A DNA stretch of 64,000 bases from Antechinus flavipes (Eukaryota): NCBI RefSeq assembly GCF_016432865.1, contig NC_067401.1, positions 184,884,001 to 184,948,000 of the forward strand, read 5' to 3'. Under the pieces are notes generated by a model. It was not told the DNA's origin. It did no database searches and saw only the letters and a list, made by a program, of their open reading frames with translations. The position numbers and the translations under genes were made by a program. This document shows positions 51,001 to 54,000 of the stretch, in pieces (within the stretch, counting starts at the first letter, position 1; each line of letters starts with the position of its first letter).

Positions 51001-54000
51001 AAAAGGAAATTTGGACTATGTCTGTTCTTGAAAAAAAAGGCAGAAGAAGGACAAGTTGTCAATACCTTCTTCTTAACAAGAGACATGACTCCAATTCGGG
51101 TCAACACCTGCTGTCGGCTTAGCCCTTCCCGAGGAACACCATCAGCAAAGGTCTCAGAGCCATCTGCCCCAGGCTCACAGAGATGTCGCATGAACAAAGA
51201 AACATAAGCCCTAAAAGAATGCAAAGTTGAATAGGGATAGAGAATCTTGAGGAATACAGGACTACAAGGGAGGTACAGGGTTTACTGAATCCCTCAGTCA
51301 TAACTCTCTCCTGTAGTCCTTTCCCTCAGTCCTCAGAGCATTTTACTCACTTGTCATATCACCACCAGGATCCCTAATCCAAACCTATCTTCAGTTTCAT
51401 TCTCCCTCTTTCCCAGGCCCCATCAGTTAGACTCTTCATCTTCCTCTGCCCACCTCTACTACAATAAGTATGGGATGTGTTGCCATACAAGCCAAATCAG
51501 ATGTCTGTCTCACACTCCTCTTTGCTCATGGAGTGAGAGTGAGACCCATTCTGGCTCTCTATTCTTGGACCCACTGAGGGGGGGTGGAGGTAGACTGTGC
51601 TCACCCCCCAGGAAATAAGGTCCTGAGGAAAATAGGAAAGGCAGTGGTGATCAGTTGAGTAAGGTCACATCATATGGAGGCCAAAGGGAATACTAACTAC
51701 CACAAATTTGATAGCTATTTCAACTCTATTCCTCTATAACCCATACTCACTTGAACTCCTTTTCAGTTTTGCCCCTCAGGTCCCGTACCAGCCACTGAGA
51801 TGTGAAGGCATCCTGTGGTGGCATCCCCCAGCGCATTACTGCATTCAGGAAGGCCTTGCGTTGACGGGTATTGAACCCCAATACCTAATAGACAGTGGGA
51901 TGCAGTGTGACCAATGAACCATGTATTCCCAATTCCTATTCCTCTCAATGATTTTGATTTCTAAGATCCCACTGCTAGGCTTTCTCTTCAAACTCTGATC
52001 CAAATAGGTTCTCAGGGAATCTGGGTCCCTAAGTTCTCACCTCAATGTTGCCCCCAACTCGAGCTAACAGTGGAGGAAGGGGTTTATCTTTCTCATTACG
52101 TAGTTGCCTCTTTGACTGACGACGTCCTGGTAGGAAAAAACTTGATTAGCAGGCCTACCTTTCTCACCCTTCAGTACACTCCAAGACACAAAAGAAAATG
52201 GAGATATGAATTATCTCTGTTGTATTTCTGATTTTTCAAAGCTATGAGGAGCTAAATGAAATAGACCTAAATCAGGAGTTCTTAACCTTTTTCCTGACAT
52301 GGATCCCTCTGGTAATCTGGTGAAGCCTATGGATCCCCTCTGAGAATAATGTTTGATGCCTACATTTGAAAAAATGCTAAATTTCAGATGGAGGTTAATA
52401 AGAATAAAAAAATTTTTTTTAGCTCATTGGAATTCATGAAACTCCCCTAAATGTATGTTCAAACTCCTCAGTATTATGTGGACTCAAGGTTTAATATCCT
52501 AATTAAATTATAGAAAATAGGCGGCATGTTTGAAGGAAATTGGAAAACAAGATACTTAACTTGGGTAGAGGATCAGAAAGACAGTTCCCACCTTCAGGTC
52601 GTTCATCAAAGTCTTCATCCTCTTCCTCTGACCCCACTGAATATTCAGACTGGTTGTCTACGAAAGTAACAAGTATGTGAGGTCAGAGCTAGTTCCTTGC
52701 CCAAGCCGTGCTAGGTTCCTCTCATCTGACTCTCAGACTCTAAATTCTACTTTTGACTCTAGACTGACTCCACTTCTAGCTTGGACTTTGTCCTCCTAAG
52801 TACTGAAATGATAATCAAGTCTTATTTTCTCCCAATCTATGGATGACTTTTTTCCCCTCTGTCCTGTTTTGATTTTTAATGTTAAGTATGCTGAAATCTT
52901 TCCCACTCAAAACACACACACACATTTGTGACTTCAGATGGTCTCCTATTCCATGACTTCTGACTCAAGTGATCTGCTTAAAGTAGTGTTCCTGAGATGA
53001 TCCAAGATGACCTCTGGATGACTTCAATATAGCTTCTATTCCCTATTAGATAAGCCAAACCCTTAAGCTCTCCTAAGATCCCAATCTTTCTTAGCCTTTT
53101 CCCATTCACCACTACCTAGATTTCTTAGGCTCTCTACATTTTACCAAATATTCCCCTCCCTTCTATCTCCCAATCTTCACTAGAACAAGGGCAGTGTGAT
53201 CCTTAATCCTCACTAGACAAGTTAAGGGCAAAGAACCCTCACCTTGGTCTTCTTGTGCAGCATCATTATAGTTGACTTGTTTCCGAACACGTTTACCCTT
53301 GCCAAGGTTTCGGGCTAGGTCCTCCTGCTGCTGCTCATAGTGATGTCGAAGCAACTTCTCCCAGTAATCAGGATCCACATTTTCTTCCTGCTTGATGATC
53401 TCTCGCTCTATCTCCTCTATCTGAAAGGAAGATAAAATGAACATTAGCAGCTCCCTAGTTTCCTTAACTAAAGCTATAATTCTTGTCTCATAGCTTCTGG
53501 CTCCCATGTGACCTTTTCTCATCACCTCATCACTTTACTACTGATGTATATACAAATCTTTTTTCCTTTTTCGAATCCAAAACGTCAATATGTCATTTGC
53601 CTTACTTACTCCACTTTTTCCCAGCTCCCCCCAATTCTCTACTTTCCCAATATGTCTATATATTCACATACTCTGCCTGCACTAATTCTATATATGAGTT
53701 TCTTTGCAAGGTATGTCATATCCATTAGATTGAGAGTTTTTCTGGGAGAGAGGACTATTTTTCCATGCAGATTAATGGTATAGTGGATAAAGCACAGGAC
53801 CTGGAGTTAGAAAGACCTGGATTCAAATCTATCTGTGTGACTCTGGGTAAGTCACTTCACTTCTGACTTCCTAAGTTTTTTCAACTGTAAAAAGGAATAA
53901 TAAGAGCAACTATTTCCCAGGGTTGTTTTAAGGATTATATCCCAGCATCTTAAATTGTGGGTTGCACTTCCACATGGGCTCTCCTAACTCAATGTGGAAG

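Follow-up and report, generated by a model that had tools for sequence, protein, structure and literature searches.

The minus strand of Antechinus flavipes DNA at positions 51416-51682 raises the question of whether one small RNA could direct two different modifications of the same spliceosomal RNA. A preliminary description of this DNA had read the stretch as a composite C/D-H/ACA scaRNA with two guides converging on G18 and U19 of the U12 snRNA. All positions given here are those of the window, by which we mean the whole stretch of 64,000 nt that was analysed. Our results indicate, with a probability of about 0.9, that the element is an orthologue of elongated SCARNA21, an intron-encoded RNA of precisely this composite kind, and the locus looks like a real gene. 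Taken together, boxes, guides, stems and the Rfam match go far beyond chance, because the results obtained with shuffled sequences combine with a match above the gathering score of the family. It should be noted that neither the composite design nor the dual guide for U12 is new. Both were published for human SCARNA21 in 2013 and 2016, and our interpretation repeats the published model, since Kishore 2013 and Jorjani 2016 describe the human RNA equivalently. No new type of RNA and no new mechanism is revealed by the A. flavipes locus.

The H/ACA core, its C/D frame and the host intron

When the whole window was scanned at gathering thresholds, SCARNA21 was the sole Rfam match. On the minus strand, 51624-51473 fits the model RF00602 from end to end (model positions 1-140 of 140), at E = 1.5e-11 and with 64.6 bits where the gathering score is 60. 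This is the family that the preliminary description had named for an Infernal search. The margin is small, as the score exceeds the threshold by only 4.6 bits; hairpin 1 aligns nearly base for base, and hairpin 2 aligns with several non-standard pairs. Since the model covers the H/ACA part alone, the C/D flanks stay outside the match, in agreement with the view that the standard model represents only the H/ACA core. The suggestion that the composite form is under-annotated holds in part: the architecture is correct, but for human SCARNA21 it is already in the literature.

The motifs were located by script, and every coordinate in the preliminary description proved exact on the minus strand (Table 1), including the CAB boxes expected in both H/ACA loops. 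Stems were written out by hand and each base pair was then checked, with the RNA numbered from 51682. C is joined to D by a terminal stem of 7 bp, all of them Watson-Crick, arranged as 4+3 around one bulged U (GGCC/GGCC and CCA/UGG). The strands named earlier for this stem, GGCCUCCAU at 51682-51674 and AUGGGGCC at 51423-51416 (minus strand), are indeed found there, but the last, ninth pair proposed for them (U-A) had to be dropped because its A belongs to the D box, so that the pair would clash with the kink-turn; what is left is the 4+3 bp stem. The C box ends in U rather than A, and this final U can pair with the A directly preceding the D box. An internal stem of seven Watson-Crick pairs closes the H/ACA insert and places D' beside C', and the spacer between C' and D is only 6 nt long (GUCUAA). 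Thus the H/ACA domain lies between D' and C', is closed by a stem and carries UGAG CAB boxes in its loops, as is characteristic of composite scaRNAs, while outside it come the C and D boxes and the terminal stem, as is characteristic of SCARNA21. Together with the Rfam match, these pairings and distances bear out the composite C/D-H/ACA architecture.

Table 1. Positions of the element, its parts and its host intron in the window
Feature	Positions	Strand	RNA nt	Remarks
Host intron	51211..51750	-		GT...AG, 540 nt; borders read
Whole composite scaRNA	51416..51682	-		267 nt, full terminal stem included
Terminal stem, 5' arm	51675..51682	-	1-8	GGCC, bulged U, CCA
C box	51667..51673	-	10-16	AUGAUGU; the only RUGAUGN of the element
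D' antisense element	51656..51664	-	19-27	CCUUACUCA; complementary to U12 nt 15-23
D' box	51651..51654	-	29-32	CUGA; 12 nt past C box
Internal stem, 5' arm	51640..51647	-	36-43	CC, A, CUGCC
H/ACA domain	51473..51624	-		Rfam RF00602
H/ACA hairpin 1	51567..51623	-	60-116	lower stem GGACC/GGUCC, 8-bp upper stem
CAB box, top of hairpin 1	51603-51600	-		UGAG; motif script
H box	51560..51565	-	118-123	AGAAUA
H/ACA hairpin 2	51482..51555	-	128-201	lower stem GCCA/UGGC
CAB box, terminal loop of hairpin 2	51528-51525	-		UGAG; motif script
ACA box	51476..51480	-	203-207	inside ACACA, either ACA usable
Internal stem, 3' arm	51443..51450	-	233-240	GGCAG, A, GG
C' box	51433..51438	-	245-250	UGAAGA; fourth base U to A compared with UGAUGA
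D box	51423..51426	-	257-260	CUGA
Terminal stem, 3' arm	51416..51422	-	261-267	UGG GGCC

Folding adds little to this picture. The unconstrained fold of the element is not significantly more stable than those of shuffled sequences (z = -1.47), and the minimum-energy fold of the whole element was set aside as uninformative, as the guide regions become paired in it.

Box frames by themselves are weak evidence. Across both strands of the window (128 kb) there are 106 RUGAUGN...CUGA frames of 60-400 nt, and in 11 of them the ends can form a terminal run of at least 5 pairs. We read out the three longest-stemmed frames on the minus strand (63318-63197, 45153-45008 and 26912-26844) and one on the plus strand (4001-4381). 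Although their terminal stems are of 7-8 bp, all four were rejected as snoRNAs: they resemble coding exons or repeats, and Rfam gives no match at any of them. The ease with which such frames arise by chance would suit an explanation in which the sole stable product is the H/ACA core, and the surrounding C/D boxes and stem are a remnant or an accident and guide no methylation. The U at the end of the C box and the departure of C' from consensus would suit it as well. The 7-bp stem that links D' and C' speaks against this explanation, to which we return below with the evidence from the D' guide.

The element lies in an intron, beginning 68 nt past the 5' splice site and stopping 205 nt short of the 3' splice site. 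The flanking exons encode adjoining segments of the SANT-like domain of CHD subfamily II (PF06461, positions 34-74 and 75-122), and an upstream exon matches DUF1087. Judged by these domains, the host is a gene of CHD subfamily II. Within this subfamily CHD3, rather than CHD4 or CHD5, is the probable candidate; the domain matches themselves resolve the host to the level of subfamily II. In the next intron of the host, an imperfect CA/TG-rich microsatellite occupies 50790-50900 and appears as THTHTH/CVCVCV frames in the list of open reading frames. The window also contains a single run of 236 N at 47512-47747, either an assembly gap or a masked stretch.

The setting and the state of the element bear on a second alternative, namely that the locus is a decaying, unexpressed pseudo-scaRNA, preserved only through the slow divergence of a short intron. 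An Rfam score barely past the threshold could be read in this way, and so could hairpin 2, with its insertion of 15 nt, non-standard pairs and poorly defined pocket. Decay is nevertheless extremely improbable in our opinion, given that the element retains intact C, D', H, ACA, C' and D boxes, its two CAB boxes, its two closing stems and its two guides for U12, and that it is located in the expected host gene family. We therefore continue to treat it as a probable SCARNA21 gene.

Two guides for neighbouring residues of U12

The U12 query was a 32-nt 5' fragment of the human RNA, standing in for U12 of A. flavipes. The reading of the guides presupposes that U12 of A. flavipes contains the stretch UGAGUAAGG. 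Bases 8, 18, 19, 22 and 28 of the fragment are A, G, U, G and U, in agreement with the modification table of a 2021 review (PMC7960923); the same table lists both Gm18 and Psi19 as mapped modifications of U12, as the preliminary description had stated.

The D' antisense element forms a perfect 9-bp duplex with nt 15-23 of the human U12 fragment (-13.7 kcal/mol). It stops exactly 1 nt short of the D' box, and the fifth base upstream of D' faces G18. Among 200,000 composition-matched shuffles of the 12-nt spacer from C to D', 44 placed a perfect complement of U12, 9 nt long, 0-2 nt upstream of D'.

Hairpin 1 supplies the second guide. Its pocket strands, UUUCCU at 51615-51610 and CUCA at 51578-51575 (minus strand), bracket U19: the former pairs with U12 nt 21-26 and the latter with nt 15-18, leaving U19 and A20 unpaired (6+4 bp, again with the human U12 fragment). 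The distance from the pocket to the H box is 13 nt, close to the 14 nt or so estimated in the preliminary description. When the pocket strands were shuffled with their composition kept, 0.5% of the trials (1,086 of 200,000) gave a 6+4 pocket positioned at U19. The same arrangement is given for the human RNA in the snoSeeker table, where ACA68/SCARNA21 appears as a 138-nt RNA hosted by CHD3 that guides U12 Psi19 with 6+4 nt in the 5' hairpin; this also agrees with the earlier characterisation of human SCARNA21 as a CHD3-intronic U12 guide. Because the D' element faces G18 and the pocket leaves U19 free, the two guides converge on adjacent residues, and the central claim made for this locus stands on pairing as well as on geometry.

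These results weigh heavily against the explanation in which the H/ACA core alone gives a stable RNA. Under it, a perfect 9-nt complement of U12 would happen to lie 1 nt before a D' box, itself 12 nt past a C box, and would happen to point to a mapped Nm site adjoining the H/ACA target. Moreover, northern blotting in human identified the C/D-H/ACA hybrid as the prevalent form of SCARNA21 (Kishore 2013, PMC4053766). We consider a core-only RNA very improbable, and the elongated composite RNA remains our preferred reading.

Elsewhere in the window, the minus strand carries GUUAUUUUCC within 48790-48920; these 10 nt are complementary to U12 nt 22-31 and stand directly 5' of a CUGA at the edge of a SINE-like repeat. 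As a second U12 guide (around 48910) it was rejected: the complement does precede CUGA, but it belongs to a SINE-like repeat without a C box and was judged to be due to chance.

Hairpin 2 and the D guide

For the human RNA, the 3' hairpin has been assigned to U6atac-83 and the D guide to 28S-4426 (Jorjani 2016, PMC4914119). At the A. flavipes locus the first proposal seems only weakly supported by what can be paired. Compared with the Rfam consensus, hairpin 2 is lengthened by an insertion of 15 nt and, folded alone, forms a nearly continuous rod. The sequence UGGC occurs twice on its 3' side, at 51491-51494 and 51482-51485 (minus strand), which gives two alternative lower stems with the 5' GCCA; the minimum-energy fold takes the inner UGGC, and the pseudouridylation pocket is then absent. 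A canonical bipartite search of hairpin 2 against a human U6atac fragment gave nothing of at least 9 bp. With the Rfam-type lower stem, GCCA/UGGC beside ACA, the best canonical arrangement on U83 of this fragment has 4+3 bp, three of them G-U, at 14 nt from ACA, which is the right spacing. Hairpin 2 can also be placed on U19 of U12, with 3+6 bp at 13 nt from ACA.

A tentative explanation, which we consider rather unlikely, is that hairpin 2 of SCARNA21 may have drifted away from a U6atac Psi83 guide and may now either be a structural orphan or act weakly, as a second guide, on U12 U19. It is suggested by the 15-nt insertion, by the rod-like fold without a clear pocket and by the duplicated UGGC. 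If this is true, U6atac Psi83 would be made by another guide in A. flavipes, or would be absent. The D guide for 28S-4426 appears doubtful in this species, because the 6-nt spacer would force any D-box guide into C'.

Proposed function and relation to known scaRNAs

The analysis itself demonstrates the motifs, the pairings, the geometry, the homology of the core to SCARNA21 and the family of the host gene; the processing of the RNA, its protein partners, its location in the cell and the modification of U12 we infer from what is established for RNAs of these classes. The CHD3-type host intron would be spliced out and trimmed by exonucleases until they reach the terminal stem and the kink-turn of the C/D boxes, which the C/D core proteins would shield. 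H/ACA proteins would bind the inner domain, and the two UGAG CAB boxes would keep the particle in Cajal bodies. There, with the 9-nt D' element on U12 nt 15-23, fibrillarin would 2'-O-methylate G18; with the first H/ACA pocket on nt 15-18 and 21-26, dyskerin would convert U19 to pseudouridine. The stretch of U12 in which G18 and U19 sit recognises the branch site of minor-class introns.

If so, SCARNA21 has kept its long, dual-function form outside human as well, with a guide for U12 G18 beside the guide for U19. The locus supports the assignment of U12 Gm18 to SCARNA21, which is published but so far a prediction; the table of the 2021 review (PMC7960923) gives scaRNA21 for U12 Psi19 and U6atac Psi83 and no guide for Gm18. 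For annotation, the locus is also an argument for SCARNA21 models that reach past the 140-nt H/ACA core.

The closest known system is human SCARNA21 itself, with which we compared the element through the Rfam consensus and published descriptions of the human RNA. In human, conserved C and D boxes lie inside a terminal stem (Kishore 2013, PMC4053766), and the elongated isoform was described as a C/D RNA that contains an H/ACA RNA and has three additional guides, among them a D' guide that targets the immediate neighbour of the U12 residue addressed by the 5' H/ACA hairpin (Jorjani 2016, PMC4914119). The residues called U12-17 and U12-18 there would be our 18 and 19 if the reference used lacks the first base. 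The same work counts five human scaRNAs as hybrids of C/D and H/ACA RNAs (PMC4914119). Human elongated SCARNA21 and the A. flavipes element share the Rfam core, the C/D boxes with the terminal stem, the CAB boxes and a host gene of CHD subfamily II, probably of the CHD3 type, as well as a D' guide on the base adjoining the 5' H/ACA target and the 6+4 pocket for U12 Psi19. They differ in that the A. flavipes element would pair with the U83 region of U6atac, the proposed human target, by only 4+3 bp and has a 6-nt spacer before the D box.

Also close are the composite C/D-H/ACA scaRNAs of the U85, U87, U88 and U89 type, reportedly described by Jady and Kiss in 2001 and by Darzacq et al. in 2002. 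The U85-type layout has its H/ACA domain, closed by a stem, between D' and C', and CAB boxes are found in the H/ACA loops. The A. flavipes element has in common with these composites the insert between D' and C', the CAB boxes, spliceosomal snRNAs as targets and the combination of methylation and pseudouridylation guides in one RNA. Unlike the U85-type RNAs, it would target the minor spliceosome through U12, with its guides directed to adjacent nucleotides of the same snRNA.
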